Assembly (NCBI GenBank): GCA_964188305.1
Contig: OZ076888.1
From: Podarcis bocagei
Lineage: Eukaryota
Direction: 5' to 3' (one strand)
Length of the DNA: 64,000 nt
Under the pieces are notes generated by a model. The model was not told where the DNA came from. It saw only the letters and a list, made by a program, of their open reading frames with translations, and ran no database searches. The position numbers and the translations under genes are program-made. Below are positions 1 through 64,000 of this stretch, piece by piece (position 1 is the stretch's first letter; every line of letters starts with the position of its first letter).

Positions 1-72
1 CTTTCCGCTTCAGGGAATGAGGCTTGGATTGGTGCGGTGGTGACCAAGCTGAGGTCTTGGTTGGGGCCGTGA
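1..72 (+). CDS. C-terminal fragment of element-encoded SGNH/GDSL hydrolase (5' part lies outside the window)
   Basis: Frame 1 reads LSASGNEAW..., matching the helix after the SGNH block V DxxH motif (H-L-S-x-x-G-N). Its position just before repeat B matches the SGNH ORF at 62749. Confidence 0.6.
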   Translation, partial: LSASGNEAWIGAVVTKLRSWLGP

Positions 73-639
73 GTGGTTTGGCGGTGAGCTGAGGGCTCCA
101 TGGCGGTTAGGCACTGGTTAAATTGGTGCTTGGAGGGGTAAGTGCCTACCCCTCCAAATGATGCGAATGGGAATTCCGTTAAAGGAAATCCAGGGGCTTG
201 CCATTCTTTCGTCCTTGTCCCCGGAGTCGGACTTGGGCCGTGCAAGCCCCACAGGAACATGAGGGTGAGAAGTAATGGTCTGGTGCCCAGCTTTATTTCT
301 CACCCAATACTTGTTTCCCACGCTGGCTTCCGCTGGTATCCGGAAGGCCAGCTCTGTCCCTGAGGGCAAGGACAGATAGTCGGAACCAGTGCCTAAGCAA
401 CCACTCACATTTTTGTATTTGAATAAAGTTGTGGCCAAAATTATGCCAAAAACCTTAAACAAAAATTGATGTGTGAAGTGTGAATTATTGGGGGGCTACT
501 GTGACTCAACACGCAAAGCGTGTTCTCCCTAGCAGAGAGCACGTGTTGCGGTTGGGAACAGGCCACCCTCCAGTGACTAGGCAAATTTAGTTGAATCCCG
601 ACCATTTAAATGGTTAAACTGGGTTGCTGGGGTGTTTTG

Positions 640-710
640 ATTGTTGCCAATTCGGAGGAGGGGTCAGAGTCTATATATACAGGGGCCAGACGTTGGCACG
701 GCCTCTTGGC
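640..710 (+). promoter_or_regulatory. Putative Pol II promoter in Ngaro repeat A (CCAAT, TATA, pyrimidine initiator)
   Basis: CCAAT 647-651, TATATATAC 672-680, CCTCTT 702-707. A TAAATAC followed 20-21 nt later by CCTCTT is kept in the diverged A copies at ~58716-58750 (+) and ~53636-53670 (-). Confidence 0.55.
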
Positions 711-2305
711 CATTTTGCATCGGATCACCCGCCCTCCCTCCCTTTAATAGGGGGGTATTTTATTTAAGCTGATCGCTTGACCTTGCTATGCCTGTCATGG
801 TGTCGTTCGCCTTGGTGCGGGGGCACGGTAGGAATTTTGCCATCTGGCTGATTGGCTGGTGCCATTTGGTTTTTGCCTACTGCGTAGCAAATCGTCACAA
901 CTTGTAAGGTTGGCGGTTAGGCACTGGTTAAATTGGTGCTTGGAGGGGTAAGTGCCTACCCCTCCAAATGATGCGAATGGGAATTCCGTTAAAGGAAATC
1001 CAGGGGCTTGCCATTCTTTCGTCCTTGTCCCCGGAGTCGGACTTGGGCCGTGCAAGCCCCACAGGAACATGAGGGTGAGAAGTAATGGTCTGGTGCCCAG
1101 CTTTATTTCTCACCCAATACTTGTTTCCCACGCTGGCTTCCGCTGGTATCCGGAAGGCCAGCTCTGTCCCTGAGGGCAAGGACAGATAGTCGGAACCAGT
1201 GCCTAAGCAACCACTCACATTTTTGTATTTGAATAAAGTTGTGGCCAAAATTATGCCAAAAACCTTAAACAAAAATTGATGTGTGAAGTGTGAATTATTG
1301 GGGGGCTACTGTGACTCAACACGCAAATAACTCCTACCAGAAATTTTGTCTAAAACAACAACAATCCACCTCATGCTATTTTTCCTTTTCCAGTAGCTGC
1401 CTTTTGAGCAGTACAGACCACCTGGTGACCATTTGCAAACTCAAAATAATTAGCCTTCAATTATTGCCAAGGAAATTGTCACCTGTTCTGTTTGCAAATC
1501 GCTGGCACTTTTGCCTTCCCCAATTAGTGGTGTTTACAGCCATCCCCTACTGGGTTGGAAGAGAAATAGGCAGCCTTCAAGCTAAGGAATGGTTGCTATT
1601 TACCAGTGTTTACATTCTGAATTATCCTGCTGGGATGTTTTTGAGGCACACATTGCAGTGGGTGGCCTGGAGGTGGTTTTATTACAAATGGAGAAGATAA
1701 AATTATTATTCATTCATGTCCGGGTTAGGTATACCTATCTTGTAAGTCTACAGAAATGAAATCACAAAAGCATGGGACTGCAAAGAACTGAAGGGTCATT
1801 TCGCCTAGCCCCTCTGCTTCAGGGCCCAATCAGAGAATAGTTGCATTGCAGAAAGGTGTTTTTTCTAACCAATTGTTCCAGATTTGTCTCTTATTGCTAC
1901 AACTGCTAAGAGTGCTGACATATTACACAGGCTCCACCCCTTTAAGAATAGAATGGACCTTTTCACATATTATACAGGTGCCACCCCTTTGAGAAAAGAA
2001 TGGGCCTTTTCACCTTGACTCCTGCTTTTGTAACTGCCAGCCTTGAATTTTTTAATGTCATCTAAATGGGGCTGCCCTTAAACACACCTTCAAAACCTTG
2101 ACTGCCATGGAATGAAGCAGTCCACTATTTTATGGACTGGGAGAATATATTCAGCCTGTATTATGTTAATTGCTATAGCTGCAAGCATGCTTCCAAGGCA
2201 AATTAAAATGGCTACTTTTGACCTTTAAACCCATGCATTGCCTGGAACCCAGATATCATAGTAACAGGAACCCTAGTCTGCCAGCTGTTCATGGTTGGTG
2301 TAGGC

Positions 2306-14111: not shown

Positions 14112-14330
14112 CAGTCGTACCTCGGCTCCTGAATGATCGAAAACCGGAAGTGAGTGTTCCGGTTTTCAAACGTTCTTTTGGAAGCTGAACGTCCGATGGG
14201 GTTTCCGCAGCTTCTGATTGGCTGCAGGAGCTTCCTGCAGCCAATCAGAAGCCATGCTTTGGAAGTCAAATGTTTCAGAAGTTGAATAAACTTCCAGAAT
14301 AGATTCTGTTTGACTTTCAAGGTACGACTG
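14112..14330. mobile_element. Tc1/mariner-type MITE, second family
   Basis: TIR CAGTCGTACCT...AGGTACGACTG with TA flanks; central palindrome CTTCTGATTGGCTGCAGG/CCTGCAGCCAATCAGAAG. Confidence 0.85.
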
Positions 14331-53013: not shown

Positions 53014-53824
53014 GCTTGTCGAGGTCCCCAAGACACCCCAAATAAAAACACAATAACACTTAATTTTGTTTAAGGTTTTTGACATAATTTTGGCCACAAC
53101 TTTATTCAAATTACAGCAATGTGAGTGGTTGCTTAGGCATTGGTAGCACTAACTAACCCCGCACGGGGACAGCTCTGACATTCACACACCCCGCGAAGTC
53201 AGCAAGGGTAAGTCACCTGGGGAGAGAGACGGGACTGGGAACAATGCCTCACCTCTCCCCAGAATGCTCCCAGGGGCTTGCGTGGCCCTAGCCCCTTGCC
53301 AGGGGGTTTCGGACAAAAGCATGGGGAGCCCCTGGGTTCCTTTAACGGAAAACCCTTGCAGCAGCAGCAGCATTTTGGAGGGGCAGGCACAGCCAAATCC
53401 ATACCCCTCCACCAACCAATTTCCAAACCAATGCCTAACCGCAACCTTACAAGTTTTAATGATTTGCTACGCAGTAGGCAAAAACCAAATGGCACCAGCC
53501 AATCAGCCAAATGGACAAAATTCCTACCGGGCCCCTGCCCCAAAGCAGACGACCCCATGACAGGCATAGCAAGGTCAAACAAACAGCCTAGCATTAGGGA
53601 AGGGAGGGCAGGTGATCTGAAGCACGCAGCGAAAAGAGGAAGTTTGTCGCTGCGTGCAATGTATTTAACAAATAGGGCTGTCAATCAATAAACGGCAACA
53701 TATAAATTTCCCCAGTAACAGCCCGCCCCTGCTTAAAAGATGGCCAAACCATCAACAACCAGCAACAGTGAGGTGTCTCGTCAGCCCCCACCGCAACACG
53801 TGCTCTCCATGAGGGAGAACACGC
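53014..53824 (-). mobile_element. Solo A-spacer-B remnant of a Ngaro-type element
   Basis: Collinear with 518-1324 (GCGTGTTCTCCC start, spacer, B repeat, AATAAAGTTGTGGCCAAAATTATG); no coding sequence. Confidence 0.85.
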
Positions 53825-56800
53825 TTAAACAGATAGACAAATATATTGTGTGATGGATTTCAGTTGTACCCACCCTTCACAACAGAATTATTCTGGACAT
53901 CTGGAGTCTCTGAACCTGATTCAAAATGAATCTAGTTTCTGGATCAAGGTGTCACCATGAATAGAGACTTTACAGAATTCTGACTGGATAGTTTGAAAAT
54001 AGGAAGCACAGTGTTGTTCTGACTTATGATTGAATGCATGTGAAAGAGTCATAGAACACACACACACATATGCTGATCTGTACCTCCATTCAGACAAGGG
54101 ATAGACAGTTTTGTGCAGTCAGAATAATTCAGTGACTGTGTGAACATACAACTTTACGCTGCATCTGGTGGTGGTATGAAGAATGGGAAAGGGAGGGGTT
54201 GCATTATTTTAGGATAAAGAATACCTTGCACAAGAAAAGGGATGCTTTGAGGAGGGCACTAAAGCTTTCCATGTGTAAAATGTTTTGTCTGTTGGAAATA
54301 TTCAAGCGTGGAACTCTTTCTCTTTCCTTGGTCATCTGAAATGCTACAGTCCAGGAAAAGCTTACCCATTTGATTCTGCTGAGTGTATGAACTTGGCTGT
54401 ATGCTGTGTCATATCTTCAAGCAGATCTCAACCCCCAAAATCTGGTGCTGGGTCTCCTTATAAGAGGCAAAAAAAGTATGGTAGATGCAGTGGTCTAACA
54501 CTCAAGCATATCAGATGCAATGCTCTAATATTCATTCATGCCTCTTTAATTACTTCAAAAGCAGTTGGACCAAAAATGTGTTTATAAAATGCAACACAGA
54601 GACCCATGCTATAAGCAGGTTGCCAATATTACTTCAGTGTGTAATCATAATTTGTCAATACTTGTTTTAAATGAAAACAACTTTTTAATTAAAAATATCT
54701 GACTGCCTGACAATATGTATTGGAAAAATGTAAATAATGTATACAAATTGTTAAGTGCAGGGATAAAGTATATGTGAGTGTTTGTACATATATAATTTTC
54801 TAGGCTATTTTCAGTAAGGAACTGAATGCAGTTTATAAGAAGAAAAATAAACATTGCACAAACCTGAGCATTCCACATACAAATTACTTTGAGTGCTTGC
54901 ATCACCTCAGTTTGTGAACTATTTGTATTGCAAGTAAATCTAATAGCAATAAAACGAGACAGGTGTCTTTCTGTCTTCTTAAATGAATAAATAAAATAGG
55001 CAAGCAACAACAGTGGCATCACACTGTTAAGGCACAGATGTGTTTAGCAATTAATAACATAAACACCAATAGCTCTCAGTGATGTAGTGTTATGATTTAA
55101 AAATAGCAGACTTCATTTATATGACAGGCAAGGAAGTGTCCCTTAAAAAATGCTTCTCTGAGTTACAAATGATAATGTTGCTTAATGCATCTGATCACTC
55201 CGAGGATGATAGGAGCATTTTAGGACTTCTGATTACTCCTAGGATGATAATAGTAAATCCATGATTCTTGGCACATCATGAGCTTAGACCCCGCAAAGCT
55301 ATGTGGATTTGCTATGGAGTCTTGCGCACTAGGAGACATAACCTGTAGAGACTTTACTGGCATGTTCCTAGGTTGTCTCATATGACATCAGGCATGGAAG
55401 TGTTCGAGCCATGGGTGTAAAGGAAATTGTAGTTGTGGCTTGAATTTTTAATAATTTTAGTGCAAACATCTCCCAATACACTCCTTTTTATATTACATTT
55501 TTGCAAGCAAAGTCCCCTAATATAAAGCATTATATGTTATTTTCACTAATATATGGATTACTATGTACATTTTCCCCAACACACATCTTTTTGTTCACAT
55601 TATTTGGTTGGAGAACTGTATCACACTTATGAAAGTCAAAGGATAATTTGCACTTCAATTCACATATTGTTTCAGGAAGTTTGAATTACAAATGCGAACT
55701 GAACCCAATTTCTCTCCCATCCCTATTACTGTCATTTCTCTTCTCTCTTTCCCAAAGTCAACCTGCCCACTTTATTTTGGGGAGTGGGAAGGTAGAGGCA
55801 GATGTGACCCCCACACACCTGCCATAGTGCATTTTCATTCCAAGAACTGGCACAGGAACTACAAGCCCCGGGATCCTCAGTGGGAAACCAACACCCACTG
55901 TTGTTGTTTTTCTTTGAGAAGATGTCAGTGTTAATTTCCTGTTCTATTCTAGAGTTTGCAGTTCCACTCCTTGGTGAGAAAAGATGGTCCTGCAGGTATA
56001 CAGGGAAACCCACTGCTGCTGAGTGAGCTTCTTCTACATAATCCTTCTTCAAAATAAGCTTGGAGCCAGCAGCAGTGATGGCAGGTGCTGCCAGGTTATT
56101 TCAAGTATTTGAATCAAACATTCAACAAGCCTCTTGAGGAAAGTTCTCATCCCTAGTCTTTCTCCCTCTCTCCCTTAAAGTCTAACAGACTCCCACTTAC
56201 ATCTCTTTTCCTTCCCCACCTTAGGATGAAGCCTAAGCCCTCTTCAACTCATGGATATTCCATTAGTCCTCGGGAAATTACTTTAGCTTCCTCAGAATGC
56301 AGATAGATGCTTCAAGTTACCAGGCTTTGGTGTTTTCGTCAACGTTCAAAGTCACTTTGAATTGGCGATGGATTATTACTGTATATTTGTGAATCTATGT
56401 GTCAAAGATTCCATATAGGAGAAAGGCAAAACACTATCCAGTAGAATAATAAGATGTGATAGAGCACTGTGAAGAGGATGATTGATTGAATGGAGAACGA
56501 CACAGAGACAGAAAGATGTAGCACTCTGAGAAGTGGAGACAAATGCAAAAGAAAATGGAATATATTAAGGGGAAGAACAACATAATTAGAACAATACCAT
56601 GTGATAAGAACTTAAATTTTCATATTGCTTTCCACTCCTGACCTCTTTGCAAACACCTCAAAGAGAACCCATCACTCACTCCTAGAATTCAGTAATCTCT
56701 AAGGTGAAGGCGAGGGGGAAACACAGGCTACGGAAATGTTGTAAAGTGAGGTAAGGTGAGGTGGGGGACTGAAAGGAAAGGATTATATGCAGAGGGAAAA

Positions 56801-59799
56801 GGACACAACTTAATACCTAATACGAGAGTAAATGTCCAAGCCCTTCATTTTAATAAGTAAATGGATAAGGTAGGTAAACATGTGACAGTCTACTGCATGA
56901 GATAAAAGACAGCTAAAGCTTCAGGGAACAATGTATTTCACAAGGACTGCCAACCCTCTGCCCAAACCAGTTTTATATCCTACATTCATAATTTTGAAGC
57001 ATGGCAAATTGATAGAACAACTGTAAAGACAAAACATTATGAAGACTTTTTTTGGGAGAGAGATATGAAAAACTCTGGTGTAAAACCTATTGAATTTCAC
57101 AGGATGTGCTTCTGAGCAGACATGATTGGGATTGCAGTATTAATTTCTGCTGCTGGTTTTGCTATTTGAATTTTATTTAGATTTGTCTCTTGATTTATTA
57201 TACTCAACACTGTTTTGTTGCATTAGTTTATTTTAAGATATTGTAATCTGCCATGAGCAAGAATTTTGCCTAGAAAGGTGGGGTATTTACATTTTAATAT
57301 AAATGTGCACATATTCAGTAGCGCCTTCTCATTAGTGACTGCAGCCTAGTTCTCAAAATATCCAGTCACTTAAAGGCAACATTGAGGATCCCTCTCCACC
57401 TCCAAAAGTAAATAATTATAAATGCATGTTTGCACTAAGCGGTACAAGTAAATATTCAACACATGTAGGTACAAAACAGTGGTGCTTCAGACTGATCTGC
57501 TTTGTGTCCAGTTCAGATCTTACTGCATATAAAATTGTGCTAAGACAATATGAATAGCTTTGATGGATGAGGCTGGTGGTGATCGCTATATATGCAACAG
57601 ATGTAGATAATAGATGTTATTATGTTCAAGAACACAGTGCATGGAAGTATCCTATGAAATGTTGTTCACAGGCTCGTTTTGGCATTCTGTATTCCATCAC
57701 CCACAATTATAGTTATTGATATTCTAACCCTCCATTAGTTAGACTAGATATCCTATTGACCTTTTATGGACCAGCTCACAATTTATCACCACTGAAATAC
57801 AAGCTGTAGAAACCCCCCCTCCCCTTTTGCAACTCTAGAACATTATAAATGAGTCTATTTCCTGTATAAGTCTTATTTAATAGTAAAAAAAGCTTAGACT
57901 CATCCATCTGCTGTCAGTGATACCGGAAGTATGGACATGAATTATGACCTCTTGTGGATGACCCTGAAATCTTCAGATATCGGCTAGCTGGAGATTTATA
58001 GCTGTTTTGTTCATGCATTTTATAATTTAGTAACACCAATAATTCTCTTTTATCTGAAATGAGGCATATAGTGCCTCCAGCCCACTTCATCCCTGCTTCT
58101 ACTGCAAATGTTGCAGGGTGCTAATAATTAAGTATATAACAGCCCTTTTTTACTTAGAGAATCTCTTACATTAAGGAAGCATCACTTATTTTATAGAATA
58201 ACATATCCATAGACATGAAATGTGTCTTATTTTAGACCAAAATGTTACCATGAAACCTCAAAGAGCAGACGCCATAGTGTCCCTTATTTTAAACTAACTC
58301 CCCACAGCATTAGGAAAAAGGTTTTTCTGTTTTCTGAGAATAATAATAATAATTCATTTTATTTCTATACTGCAGTGGAACTTGTGCATTGATGCATCTA
58401 ATTTTCTTTTTCCAATTTTCATGCATTTAAACCCCACCTTTCTTCTGTCATGGAGTCCAAGGTGCTATACATGTGGTTTCAAGGCAGTTACCCATCAAGG
58501 CACTGACCATGCTGTTATTTTATGCCATTAGCCTGCTTTGTACAAGCTAAACTGTGGCTTAAGCATGTTCTCCCTAAATGAGAGCATGTGTTGCGGTTGG
58601 GGAATACAGGCCACCCTGGTGTGATTGGGCAAGTTGGATAACCCAGGCCTTAAGTGGTTAACTGGGTTACTGGGGAGTTTTGTATGTTGCCAATTCGGAG
58701 GAGGGGTTTGGAGCCTTTAAATACAGGTCGCCATTGCTGGGCGTCCTCTTGGCCTTTTTGCACCGGATCACATGGAGCACTGGGACAATCTTCTCATTGT
58801 CTGGTTACATTTCTTTATTTCTTTATTTCCCCTTTCTTTTTAATCCTCTCTAGTCCCTTAAATAATTTAATTCCCCCCTTTTCCTGTTCAATTTCCCACC
58901 CCACCCCTTACCCTGCCCTGTGGGAAGATTCTCCCTGTATCTGTGGCTTGCCTTTACCAATAGTGAGAGAGCCCCCGTTAGGGGCTTTCTTTCGCAAAAA
59001 GGTTTCCCCCATTTCTCTTGTTGAAATTGTGGGGCTAGTCAGGGCTGTTCCCAGCTTAGCTGGTATCACTTTCGTTTATAGTATCCCCGAAGGTTGGCTT
59101 TATGGCTCCCTGTGCCTCCAAGGACTATGAGCACTCTGTATATGCTCTTGAACTATGCTGTTTCTGAACAAGTTTATTTTCTTTAAGTTTGTTTTGCCCT
59201 GATAGTGGCGACTGCCATTTTAGAGATGAGCCATTGTGGCTTGGTGGCTAAAGTGTAGGACTAGGACCTGGGAGACAGGGTTCATATACCCCTCTTAGCC
59301 ATTGTTATAACAAAACAAAACAAACTGCCCCTTATGGGCTATTCTGTTGCTGGGTAGTTCGGCCCATTTGTGATAAAAGAACTTTGGGTTTCTTGAAGGG
59401 GTGCTTCCCTCTAAAAGGGAAGCAGGGGTACCTGGACAAGCTGTGGGCTACCTCAACTCTGCTATTTCAGTGGAAACATTTATGCCTGGCCTAGCAGGTG
59501 ATCCTAGGGCTTTGCCCTAGAATTCTATGGCCTGGAAGCGTTTCCGGCCTCAATAGTGTCCCCATGTGGTCCATGAAGCATTGGTTTCACTGGGTCAGTG
59601 GATAGTGCCGGTAATGCCTAGGTTGCAGGATTGGTCCCTGTATGGGACAGCTGCATGCTCCCCCATTGCTCTACCTGGACACTTAAGTCCTTTTGGTGGT
59701 TACCTCACTGCGAGGGATGTAACGGGCGCCATGTTTGCAATATGCAACTGGGAGAAAGCACCTTTGCGTGCCCGCATTGCAGTTTGCTCTGTGCGTTGC

Positions 59800-60395
59800 A
59801 GAGCACGGCGCTGCACGGGCTGCAATTGCATTGCATTGCTAGGAGATTTGCAGTTGCATTGCACGGAGGGTGTGTGCATTGCATGGAGGGTGTGTGTGCA
59901 TTGCATGGAGGGTGTGTGTGCATTGCACGGAGGGTGTGCAGTGCACGGAGGGTGTAGTTGCATTGCATGGAGTGTAGTTGCATTGCATGAAGGGTGTGTG
60001 CATTGCAGGGAGTGTGTAGTTGCATTGCATGGAGGGTGTAGTTGTATTGCACAGAGTGGTTTTTTTTTTTGTTTGCATTGCCCGGAGTGTGTGTGCATTG
60101 CACGGAGTATGTAGTTGCATTGAACAGAGGGTGTGCAGTGCACGGAGTGTGTAGTTGCATTGCATGGAGTGTAGTTGCATTGAATGAAAGGTGTGTGCAT
60201 TGCAGGGAGTGTGTTTTGCATTGCACGGAGTGTGTAGTTGCATTGCACGGAGGGTTTGTGTGTGCATTGCATGGAGTGTGTAGTTGCATTGCACAGAGCG
60301 TGCTTTTTGCATTGCACGGAGTGTGTAGTTGCATTGCATGGAGAGTGTGTGCACTGCACGGAGTGTGGTTTTTTTTTGCATTGCACAGAGTGTGT
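59800..60395. repeat. Minisatellite of ~20-22-bp units TGCATTGCA(C/T)GGAGTGTGTAGT inside the Ngaro gag region
   Basis: Read directly; produces long overlapping low-complexity Cys/His ORFs on both strands. Confidence 0.92.
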
Positions 60396-60714
60396 GTCTG
60401 AAAAGGAAGCTGGCTTGGCGGCAGCTTGGTTGGGACTTCTTTAGGGGTTCTGGCCAGCGTCGGCCCTGTAAATTTACATATCATGATGGCAGCACAAGAT
60501 GCCCCCTGCCCGAGCGGGGGCTGGAAGCTGGCAAGCAATAGCTCAATACCTTTTGCCCATATTCCCATTTTATTTAGGGATCCAGTTGGATATCGTTGCT
60601 AAAACATACCACTTGGCTATGGAGAAGCTGTCTGCCTTGAAGGAAGTTATTTTGTAATACTTCCTCTGTAGCAAGTGATGCTTCACCAGATCCGATCTTG
60701 CTGGGTCACTTAAC

Positions 60715-61160
60715 TAATCTTCCCACTAGGCCAGGCTGCCTAGATTTCACCCCTCCCATATCCAAGAATCTCCTGAGGAGTCTGCTGATTCTCCAGAGAG
60801 GAGGAGGCGTGTTCTGGTCTCTACTTATTCTGCTCCAGCACCAAATCAGTCAGTCAGTCAGTCAGTGTCGGAGAGAGAGAGAGACTGAGTGTTAGAGATC
60901 ATGTGTAGAGATAAGGCTGCTGCTAAGGACAGCTGCAGACACTCAGTGCAGTGCAGCATTTATTTATGCTTAGACCTATTAAGCTCTGTATATAGTTTGT
61001 ATAGTTGTAAATAGAATAAAGAAGATATTCTACAGAGCTGCTCTCCGAGTTGTTTATATACTCTGCTAGACTCTGCTGTACTCTGCTGTGCGACAACTGT
61101 CTTTTGTTGGAGTGAATCCGGTGCTCACAACTCTAAGCTGTGAGTCCACAGCACTTTGAC
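60715..61160 (+). mobile_element. LTR-like insertion interrupting the Ngaro RT/RNase H
   Basis: Non-coding; (CAGT)n and (GA)n tracts; AATAAA near 61015 then a GT-rich stretch; RT-RNase H homology is interrupted here. Termini not resolved. Confidence 0.45.
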
Positions 61161-63406
61161 CTGTTCATGTGCAGAAGGTGGTCTCTGGAAGTGCTACCCA
61201 GCTCGCCTAGCCCAGTTGGGGCTGAAGTGGATGAGTCCAGTTGGTGGCACTGGCTCAAGGGCGATGCTGACAGAGGTCCCCTTACCTTTTTGTATGCCTA
61301 CCAAGTGTGGTGAAGGCAGATATCAGGCGATGGTAGCAATTCCTGAATGTATGCAATAGTAGTTCGCCATGGCAGGATACCTTGAACCCGCTCAGGGATT
61401 TTCAGGTTCATGCTGGTGCTGCTGGATCTTTGCCCTTTGGTTTTTATTTCAAGGGCTGCTGGTGTGCAAAGCTATGGCCTCAAGCCCTGTGTGGTGAGGC
61501 AATCATGTGACATAACTTTTCTTGAGTTTTCCCCATTGTAGTAGCAGTTCACGTGGCCCGAGGAGTTCAGTGACCATCGGATCTGCTTTTGGTCTGATAA
61601 CCAGGTAGTGGTGAGCGTCTTGGCAAAACAGTCCTCATGCTGTAGCACAGTCTCCGCCCCTCCGCTCATGCTTTCGAGCTGCGCCACTTAAGGTTTAATA
61701 TTGTGCTTTCTACTCTCCAAATTACGCTGACACTATCTGATTTTCAGATGAAGCGCTTCAGATCCTGGGCTCCAGACTCAGCTATTGCCAGACTTTTCCA
61801 GACCTGTGGCATTTTGACAACAATTAGTAATTTCAGAGAGCGGCAGCTTCCATTTCCCCTTCTGCTTTTACCTCTTATGGGAAGGCCTGGATGGATTTCT
61901 TAGCCTTAAGCTGGCAGTTCTCGGCCATTCAGAAGAATTGGCCCCCATCCTCTGAGCAGATCCTGCAGTATTTGGTCCACCTGCTGCAGATTGGGCATGC
62001 GGTTATAACTATCCGAATTCAGTCCGCTGCAATGTCTGTTACATTGAAGCTTTATTTTTCAGAGACCCTTGTATAAAGTTTGCAGTGCGCAGGGCCTTGG
62101 AAGGTTGGAATAGGCTCCAACCTCATAGGACAGTGGGCAGGGAGTCGGTCAATTTTTACCTATGCAGTATCTGCAACAAGTTAAAACTTGTCTGCGGGTT
62201 AAAGATCAAGGTGAGACTCCTTTCAGTAGTCCATTGCATTTTCGCACTGAGGGTTGGGGAAATGGTTGTTGGAGCCAGCACGGGGCTGAGAGTCTGGAGG
62301 CTTATTGCTTCAGGACTTTTCCTTTGGAGCTTGTCATTAGAGTTGGTACCTCTAAAACAGACTTAGTGGGCAGGAGTGCCACAATCAGGCTTCCTGCCAC
62401 AGGTGAGGAGGGCCCTTGCCCAGTTATGGATAACAGAATATTGGCTTTTTATTCCCTGGGGGCTGGCCCGCTCCTAGTGCATGAAAATGGGTTCCCGTTA
62501 GCCCGGCATCAATGTGCTTACATCGTGCACCAGTTATTACAGCCTGCGGCTTGCTTACCGCTGAACACTCCTCATTTCTTACGATTAGGTGCTGCTGCAA
62601 AGGCTGCACACTGGGGGCCTGTCAGTAGACAGGATTGTGAATACGGGTCATTGGAAGTCTGACGCTGACAAGGGTTATATCAGGAAGTGTCACAGTGATG
62701 TCTGTGCTGATGCTTGTCTGTTATTTCCTTTTTTTTTTTTTTTCATAGGAGCAGCTGTGCACATTTGAGCCACAGCATTGTACACTAGGCTGGCAAGCAT
62801 GTTGACGAGTTTGGACTGGGGCGCCATCTCAGTCTTCCTGCCCATGTGAACATATACTGGATGTCCAGATGGGGAATGCTTTGGGAGGAGATCCTTCCTT
62901 TGGTGCGGTCGAGTGTGACCTGTGCAGGTCCTCCCGCAGTGCTGGTGGTACAGCTGGGCGAGAATGTTTGCTGTCTTCCTCCAGCATAAGTTTGCATTCC
63001 TGCATGCAAGAGGGCTTGGATTGAGTTGATGGCAGCTCTCCCTGGACTCAAAATAATTTAAGGCATTGGTTCAAGGTGGTTTGGAGGGGGGGTTGGAGCA
63101 CCTGTCCCCTCCAATGCGCAAAGATGTTCCATTAAGGGAATCCAAGGATTCGCCATGCTTTTGTCGACCCCTTTTGAGGGGTAGGGCCATGCAAGAGTCC
63201 CTGGGAGCATTTGGGGTGAGCTTGAGTCTGATCCTGGTTCATTGCTCCCCCATGCTGTTTACTGGAACTGACGATATGGTGGGGCCCAGTCGTCAGTGCT
63301 GCCCTGCTGAGGTCAGGTGCAGCTAGTCGGGAACCAATGCCTAGACAAACTACCACCGAGCAGGCCAGAAAGCATGTTAATAAGGCGGTGGATAATAGAA
63401 TAAAAT

Positions 63407-64000
63407 AGGATCGGGGCTGCCACGACTGCAGCACACTGGGGTCTGTCAGCCGACAGAATAAAGGATCTGGGTCGCTGGAAATCGAACGCGTTTAAAAGTT
63501 ATGTTCGCTAACATTTTGGTATGCTTATATTTTGTTTGCTTGTTTATCCCAGGTTTAGCGGCTGTCCGCATCTGGATGGTGTGGCACAGTATCGTGCATT
63601 GGGCTGGCATCAGAACCCGGCAGTCCGGATTGGGAACAGGTCTCGGCCTTCCTCCACATGTCCACTTGTCTTGGCTGTCCAGATGGGGAATGCGCTGGTC
63701 AGAGTTCCTGCCATTGATTCGGAGGCAGATGTTTTTGGAAGGGCCGCCCACGGCTATTGTGGTGCAGCTGGGTGAGAACGACCTGGTTTCCATGGACTGT
63801 TTTTCTTTACGTGCGGCAATCCTGGGTGACCTGGAGGTGCTGCGGTCTATGATGCCGTCAGCAAAAATTTTTTGGTCAAAGCTTTTGCAACGACGCGTTT
63901 GGAGTGGCAGTCGTTGCCCAGCCGCCACCGAAAGGGCCAGAAAACGTATCAATTCTGTGGTGTCGAAAAAGATTTTGGAGCTGGGTGGTGATGTGATTTC
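63407..64000 (+). mobile_element. Second, better-preserved Ngaro-type fragment (YR C-terminus plus SGNH ORF), running off the window
   Basis: 63407-63511 encodes RIGAATTAAHWGLSADRIKDLGRWKSNAFKSYVR* (catalytic R, W, Y region of a YR), followed by an open SGNH frame. Confidence 0.88.
63501..64000 (+). CDS. Element-encoded SGNH/GDSL hydrolase, 3' incomplete; omitted by the ORF track because no stop lies in the window
   Basis: MFANILVCLYFVCLFIPGLAAVRIWMVWHSIVHWAG...LSRWGMRWSEFLP..GPPTAIVVQLGENDL..KIFWSKLLQRRVW..ERARKRIN; blocks I (xHS), II (G) and III (GxND). Confidence 0.75.
   Translation, partial: MFANILVCLYFVCLFIPGLAAVRIWMVWHSIVHWAGIRTRQSGLGTGLGLPPHVHLSWLSRWGMRWSEFLPLIRRQMFLEGPPTAIVVQLGENDLVSMDCFSLRAAILGDLEVLRSMMPSAKIFWSKLLQRRVWSGSRCPAATERARKRINSVVSKKILELGGDVI

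Follow-up and report, generated by a model that had tools for sequence, protein, structure and literature searches.

A hairpin with a U-rich internal loop, located in the 3′ spacer of lacertid Ngaro-type retrotransposons, is a real, selected structure of the sense RNA. We describe it in the window, i.e., the whole 64,000-nt stretch of Podarcis bocagei DNA analyzed here, and in related loci, where it keeps its loop while its stems are exchanged. The reading that fits the hairpin best is an ENE-like clamp for the poly(A) tail, in which a triplex would form and stabilize the RNA. We put this reading forward tentatively, with somewhat less than even confidence.

A split-repeat element and its spacer

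The hairpin lies in the 3′ end of a split-repeat retrotransposon (window 1–1327), the 5′ part of which falls to the left of the window. Relatives were collected by an exhaustive protein search from a hydrolase frame of the window (63549–63998), which gave graded matches in Podarcis muralis, Zootoca, Lacerta, and two geckos. The matching P. muralis proteins are of the SGNH/GDSL type, carry PF13472, and are up to 82% identical to the frame. The DNA around the matching hydrolase genes was fetched, giving ten loci (L001–L010), among which were full-length elements of four kinds, all built as A1-internal-B1-A2-X-B2. Split direct repeats in the order A1-internal-B1-A2-B2, which is the Ngaro architecture of the literature (PMC7192593), are present in the part of the element that the window covers and, with A1, in its full-length relatives, and a tyrosine recombinase C-terminal motif was recognized by eye in the translation. 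The host is a Ngaro-type tyrosine-recombinase retrotransposon with split repeats, in agreement with the initial annotation, which had assigned the hairpin to such an element.

The two B repeats of the window show no difference over 417 nt. A2 matches the A1 of full-length P. muralis elements at 77–98%, the match ending at 727/728 every time, and in all four full-length kinds the A match stops exactly where X starts. The element termini are 5′ AAAGCGTGTT... and 3′ ...AACACGCAA. At the junction of B with A (window 500–546; element ends of L001–L004), the 3′ end ..AACACGCAA and the 5′ end AAGCGTGTT.. make up a palindrome, ..AACACGCAAAGCGTGTT.., which is a likely candidate for a recombinase site. 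As a primer-binding site, the start of B (TGGCGGTTAGGCA.., TGG first) was tentatively rejected, since it is not known to resemble a vertebrate tRNA 3′ end. The features are listed in Table 1.

Table 1. Positions of the repeats, the spacer, the hairpin and its copies, and the related full-length elements (window coordinates unless a locus is named)
Feature	Position	Strand	Remarks
Repeat B1	101–517	+	417 nt; AATAAA at 422; 100% identity to 911–1327
Repeat A2	516–729 (approx.)	+	CCAAT near 646, TATA-like box at 672, GCCATTTTG near 708
Spacer X	730–910	+	181 nt; C-rich tract at start; ends at B2 start TGGCGG
Three-helix domain (predicted)	783–890	+	P1 783–791/882–890, P2 800–810/817–826, P3 = U-loop hairpin
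U-loop hairpin	826–882	+	57 nt, inside spacer X between A2 and B2
Internal loop, 5′ strand	833–838	+	AAUUUU
Internal loop, 3′ strand	870–875	+	UUUUUG; U870 able to pair with G839 (leaving UUUUG, 871–875)
Repeat B2	911–1327	+	AATAAA at 1232, then invariant GTTGTGGCC; element end ..CAACACGCAA
Second hairpin copy	53470–53532	−	91.5 bits; in solo A-X-B unit, ~53040–53826 (−)
Full-length P. muralis element	L003 3631–10896		96% identity to window element
Full-length P. muralis elements	L001 and L002		87% identity to window element
Full-length P. muralis element	L005 5309–12902		70% identity to window element
Full-length P. muralis element	L010 6039–13911		A and B hardly alignable to those of the window
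Short diverged hairpin L003b	L003 16906–16949		In another A-X-B unit
Short diverged hairpin L002b	L002 11897–11940	−	In another A-X-B unit

Spacer X is confined to the gap between A2 and B2 in L003, L001/L002, L005, and L010, and occurs neither after A1 nor before B1. All ten distinct hairpin copies lie in a spacer ahead of a B repeat (between A2 and B2 in full-length elements), and none follows an A1. We confirm the earlier statement that the motif occurs neither ahead of B1 nor behind the A1 at 58563, and it is likewise absent after A1 in the four full-length P. muralis elements.

Several other features were observed in these sequences. X begins with a C-rich tract (CCCNCCCTCCC..) directly after A2, the gecko element included (window 730–760, L007 13154–13180, L010 13355–13375), and in the window copy this tract pairs with the G run that follows it to form a small hairpin. 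L004 3944–10602 (P. muralis) has the order A1-internal-B, without A2-X-B2 and yet with a normal terminus; it is either a product of recombination between B1 and B2 or a copy made from an RNA that ended in B1. A second Ngaro-type element, diverged and disrupted, spans window 58563–63400, beginning with its A1 (58563–58771) and holding a satellite of 20–22-nt period (59854–60391). It is followed by a fragment of a third element (63390–64000), in which the SGNH hydrolase frame looks intact and runs past the end of the window. An unrelated palindrome in another repeat (14190–14260) contains two facing CCAAT boxes (CTGATTGGCTGCAGG..CCTGCAGCCAATCAG).

The poly(A)-signal motif AATAAAGTTGTGGCC (window 1232–1246 and 422–436; L005–L010) is near-invariant in lacertid Ngaro units that are otherwise very diverged, and is followed by freely varying sequence; for this reason, we suggest that transcripts may be cleaved at its conserved CA. 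The counterpart of the motif is nearly the same in the two geckos (AATAAAGCTGTGGCC in Paroedura), and reads AATAAAGTTGTGCCC in the lacertid unit of L002b.

Fold, conservation, and covariation of the hairpin

The initial annotation had folded 826–882 into a hairpin in which AAUUUU faces a strand with a U run, and this fold was reproduced. According to our in silico analysis, the RNA of window 824–884 reaches −21.6 kcal/mol (z = −2.78; 4 of 200 dinucleotide shuffles fold equally well), with a lower stem at 826–832/876–882 and an upper stem at 839–842/867–870 and 845–848/861–864. Within transcripts of 558 nt and 1162 nt, the pairs form with p ~0.9 and the U runs are unpaired with probabilities of 0.8–0.99. 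A simple descriptor of the shape finds about one such hairpin per random 64 kb, both strands counted. The architecture alone is not beyond chance, and its significance comes from conservation and covariation. The B2 AATAAA (1232) lies 347–350 nt downstream, close to the 350 nt or so given previously; across subfamilies the distance is 309–363 nt, with AATAAAGTTGTGGCC downstream of the hairpin in all units.

In an RNAalifold consensus of eight copies, the hairpin is one arm of a predicted three-helix domain. The closing helix P1 has p ~0.95 in context and limited covariation, and the small hairpin P2 shows double changes (CG to UA). The domain is followed by a tail, TAGCAAA..GTCACAACTT, which is invariant in most copies and degenerate in L002b and in the solo copy of the window. 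Scans for this conserved motif returned 21 matches from metagenome collections and 0 from viral ones. No hairpin lies near any of the 21; these matches are due to chance, and two of them are on contigs labelled human-gut metagenome.

The second copy in the window has an extra T and a C>T change relative to the first, and the middles of A and B in the two units are only ~55–65% identical. The solo copy had been called nearly identical in the midst of diverged A and B repeats, which holds for the hairpin and for the middles of the repeats. However, the block conserved between the two units (~780–935) is broader than the hairpin, and conservation is also seen at the 5′ end of A and around the poly(A) signal in B. 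In DNA contigs of a related species, word depth over 851–900 exceeds that of A or of the end of the internal region by a factor of 10–100, a comparison confounded by the 88% identity cut-off; the high depth therefore points to a hairpin 3′ half and tail that far more copies or subfamilies have in common than share the coding part.

From eight hairpin copies, a covariance model was built that found eleven in the window and the loci, ten of them distinct and belonging to seven subfamilies. The alignments and covariance models span only the non-coding hairpin (62–66 nt) or the surrounding domain of 110–145 nt. The model-fitted alignment has 97.2% of its cells paired and shows double-sided changes in 8 of 15 pairs, values that none of 500 shuffles reached, although the alignment is fitted to the structure, the sequences are related, and the shuffle control ignores relatedness. 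Sliding the partners by 1–3 columns lowered the covariation score from 0.41 to 0.02–0.06. The lower stem occurs as GGUAGG/CCUACY, GGCAGG/CCUGCC, GGAAAGG/CCUUUCC, and GGGAAG/CUUCCC, with pairs exchanged among C-G/U.G/U-A/G-C and among U-A/C-G/A-U, and with C-G, U.G, or U-A as the outermost pair.

Folded one by one, the ten distinct copies from the seven subfamilies all take on one shape, with energies of −19 to −22 kcal/mol. In every copy the antisense strand folds less stably than the sense strand, and G.U pairs are in use. RNA reads of another lacertid independently show the same kind of linkage, since the subfamily that dominates one run links T829C with A879G and G839C with T870G. Because the copies fold independently and whole stems are exchanged, we argue that the covariation signal is real despite the fitted alignment and the relatedness of the sequences.

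The internal loop is what all the copies share. Its 5′ strand consists of AA plus 3–5 U in 10/10 distinct copies, and its 3′ strand of 3–6 U followed by (C)G, or by GU in L002b only. The lengths of the 5′/3′ U runs are 4/4–5 in the window, 5/6 in L010, 4/5–6 in L003, 3/4 in L005, 4/3 in the solo copy of L005, and 3/3 in L003b. Two near-invariant G-C pairs cap the lower stem, separated from the U runs by the invariant AA (5′) and (C)G (3′); an invariant C-G pair is found at the base of the upper stem, whose closing pair is G.U or C-G.

The apical part, on the other hand, is replaced from one subfamily to another. In the window copy, the apical loop has 12 nt and contains a perfect inverted CCAAT (Y-box, CTGATTGGCTGG), which is found in 7 of the 10 distinct copies. 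The apical loop of L010 is AAUCUUCG and has no Y-box (AATCTTCG), in L003b and L002b the apical part gives way to another 5-bp stem, capped by a tetraloop (GUUG or AUUG), and the Y-box is broken (GATTAG) in the young L005 element, where A1 and A2 are 100% and B1 and B2 99.5% identical. Since the U-rich loop and the G-C pairs persist while the apical part is replaced, the internal loop is probably the functional core of the hairpin. The initial annotation named several outcomes that would count against its reading, and those open to in silico analysis (stems that do not covary, U tracts that are not kept, a motif equally present after A1 in intact elements) did not occur.

The initial annotation also mentioned a similar motif in the 3′ UTRs of reptile CR1 elements. 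This was not supported: no CR1 copy of the motif was found in the window or the loci, and a very similar variant, GGAAAGG..AAUUUC..UUUCG..CCUUUCC, is that of L003b, which sits in a Ngaro-type A-X-B unit.

A young Ngaro element of the gecko Paroedura has a spacer of 55 nt, whose resemblance to the lacertid X is confined to the C-rich start and to GTCACA at the end, and the whole of the non-coding 3′ part of the element contains no such hairpin. Because the gecko spacer is short and without the hairpin, we conclude that the hairpin domain was inserted, in one lineage, into a spacer that was ancestrally short. The element at L007 7179–14336 (Paroedura picta) has an extra tandem unit, A1-internal-B-A-X-B-A-X-B, with repeats 99.5–100% identical and an X of 55 nt.

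A putative poly(A) clamp and its alternatives

In the ENE-like reading, the RNA would be cleaved at the B2 poly(A) site, ~370 nt downstream of the hairpin, and its poly(A) tail would fold back. Watson-Crick pairs with one U run and Hoogsteen pairs with the other would hold the tail, giving U.A-U triples, and the clamped tail would be hidden from deadenylases, raising the level of RNAs that contain X. We infer that transcription starts in A and polyadenylation takes place in B, as we do triplex formation and stabilization themselves.

Because X sits only between A2 and B2, the beneficiaries would be RNAs that read through the B1 poly(A) site, together with short RNAs begun in A2 or in solo units. 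The read-through RNA would be the sole transcript with a complete A and a complete B, i.e., the template needed by a split-repeat element. The earlier proposal that the motif stabilizes only this RNA is right in that read-through RNA contains X, but "only" is too strong: a TATA and a CCAAT are present in A2 itself and solo A-X-B units are common, which means that short X-B RNAs would carry the motif too. In a weakened form, a stabilizer in X would favor the competent template. The fuller claim, that the hairpin is a true ENE-type clamp, a first for both reptile transposons and the DIRS/Ngaro order, and that it preferentially stabilizes the B1 read-through transcript, is possible, and we hold it with less confidence again.

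ENEs are defined by a U-rich internal loop adjoining G-C pairs (PMC7583470, PMC12501189), and in the lizard hairpin both loop strands are U-rich in every distinct copy and are kept while the stems covary. The ENE of Evade lies between the ORF and the 3′ LTR (PMC12501189), a position that the hairpin mirrors. That a young gecko Ngaro lacks the hairpin is easier to reconcile with an accessory module, for example an ENE, than with a core signal for replication.

The fit to known ENEs has its limits. The KSHV PAN ENE forms five U.A-U triples and three A-minor triples (PMC7583470), whereas the U runs of the lizard hairpin measure 3–6 nt and several subfamilies, the young L005 element included, can offer just three U.A-U triples. 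The G-C pairs of ENEs abut the U runs (PMC12501189), and in the lizard hairpin the AA/(C)G spacer lies between the U runs and the G-C pairs of the lower stem. An ENE alone also leaves the larger conserved block (~780–935) unexplained.

Encoded partners for the U runs were considered as well. In the window family, CAAAAUU and CAAAAACC after AATAAA complement both U runs, and they are absent in L010, L003b, and L002b, which points to chance. No A tract is encoded throughout the subfamilies, and only the poly(A) tail, joined on ~370 nt downstream, could serve as the partner in a triplex.

A search of Rfam 15, a release whose ENE content is unconfirmed, gave no match with E up to 10 for the window copy or the short L003 version, not even with the search confined to ~100 nt. 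RNA reads of a related species (two bulk runs and one single-cell run) cover the unit thinly, at 88–135 per run, fall on both strands over X, and reveal no start or end sites and no poly(A) site; they are uninformative on stabilization.

Conservation, covariation, and a position upstream of B2 only would be equally expected of a protein-recognition signal on the read-through RNA, with the U-loop as the binding site for Gag-like packaging, recognition by the reverse transcriptase, or CTE-like nuclear export. Retroviral CTE and psi elements use internal loops. The larger three-helix domain and the conserved TAGCAAA..GTCACAACTT tail suggest more than a poly(A) clamp, and in DIRS-1 a 3′ hairpin has been proposed as the primer for reverse transcription (PMC7192593). 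However, the young and apparently active gecko Ngaro does without the hairpin, which is not what a core replication signal of the group would allow, plain U runs on both strands would be an odd site for a specific protein, and self-priming would have to act from ~370 nt away from the RNA 3′ end, which is too distant. We consider such a signal unlikely, though worth keeping in mind.

The hairpin could also act on the choice of poly(A) site, as an upstream element that strengthens the B2 site over its identical counterpart in B1, with the result that transcripts read through B1 and end in B2. B1 and B2 being the same, any difference in their use must stem from context, and X is the only upstream difference. 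In HIV-1 and SV40, 3′ processing is stimulated by U-rich elements located upstream. Known enhancers of this kind are within ~100 nt of the hexamer, and the distance in the lizard element exceeds 300 nt; its fair constancy (309–363 nt), which would suit such an element, follows simply from the length of B, which is conserved. Nor do such elements require paired stems with U runs facing each other, and we find this explanation improbable.

That the hairpin has no function, its stems being kept by chance or by descent among close copies, might be argued on the grounds that all copies come from lacertids and one group of elements, that the alignment was fitted to the structure and the shuffles ignore relatedness, and that the descriptor count is at chance level. 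The divergence of the copies is deep, A and B of L010, L003b, and L002b being barely alignable to those of the window; each copy folds alike on its own, double substitutions have arisen independently several times, and the upper stem has been exchanged, and absence of function is accordingly very improbable.

Least probable of all is a DNA-level promoter or enhancer with the apical inverted CCAAT as an NF-Y site: a Y-box in 7/10 distinct copies and a segment among the most conserved of the unit would fit, but the box is gone in L010, L003b, and L002b and broken in L005 while stems and U runs persist, and compensatory changes, G.U pairs, and the energy bias toward the sense strand indicate selection on a single-stranded fold, so that with the internal loop as core and CCAAT lost in four subfamilies this reading is largely refuted.

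Known poly(A)-binding structures and meaning for the element group

ENEs have so far been predicted mainly in viruses, in transposons of plants, fungi, and a slime mould, and in a stickleback retrovirus (PMC7583470), and the ENE of Arabidopsis Evade has been shown to work (PMC12501189). Like the KSHV PAN ENE and other single-domain viral ENEs, the lizard hairpin has U runs on both loop strands between helices, G-C pairs at the edge of the loop, and a position upstream of a poly(A) site (PMC7583470), which in the lizard element is a predicted one. Unlike the viral ENEs, it has the AA/(C)G spacer, stands ~350 nt from the poly(A) signal, forms an arm of a three-helix domain, and has no Rfam match.

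With the transposon ENEs of plants and fungi (Evade/Copia93; the double ENE of TWIFB1), it shares its place in a retrotransposon RNA and a sporadic distribution of the accessory kind (PMC12501189, PMC7583470). Plant ENEs are mostly double-domain structures with four U tracts; the lizard hairpin is single-domain and belongs to a vertebrate element with a tyrosine recombinase rather than an integrase, and its ENE function is putative.

MALAT1-like triple-helix modules have multiplied in Anolis according to Zhang et al. (2017, as cited in PMC12941219). The triple helix of MALAT1 and MEN-beta resembles the hairpin in its U-rich internal loop, but it comprises an encoded A-rich tract and a downstream tRNA-like structure, and the hairpin has neither. 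A MALAT1-like identity was rejected: the A tracts after AATAAA are missing in L010, L003b, and L002b, and there is no tRNA-like structure and no match to mascRNA.

Retroviral signals such as the MPMV CTE and the HIV-1 U3 upstream polyadenylation element are, like the hairpin, present once and just before the 3′ repeat. Such signals mark the full-length RNA or the 3′ poly(A) site. They have no similarity to the hairpin in sequence or loop, and bind NXF1 or CPSF, not poly(A).

The DIRS-1 hairpin mentioned above likewise lies near the 3′ end of the RNA of a tyrosine-recombinase retroelement (PMC7192593). It is found at the very 3′ end, whereas the lizard hairpin lies ~370 nt upstream and is missing in the gecko Ngaro. 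In the literature that we searched, such an element is described neither for tyrosine-recombinase retrotransposons nor for transposons of reptiles.

The selection and protection of template RNA in tyrosine-recombinase retrotransposons is very little understood, down to the primer (PMC7192593). A covarying RNA domain confined to the gap between A2 and B2 provides a concrete and testable cis element for this group. If it does not clamp poly(A), it is still an undescribed structured RNA family, without an Rfam match and with very many copies in lacertid genomes. If it does, ENE-type stabilization would extend to vertebrate transposons and to a new order of elements, and RNA stability would be linked to read-through of a poly(A) site. 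The clamp would then act as a quality filter for the sole RNA able to regenerate a split-repeat element.
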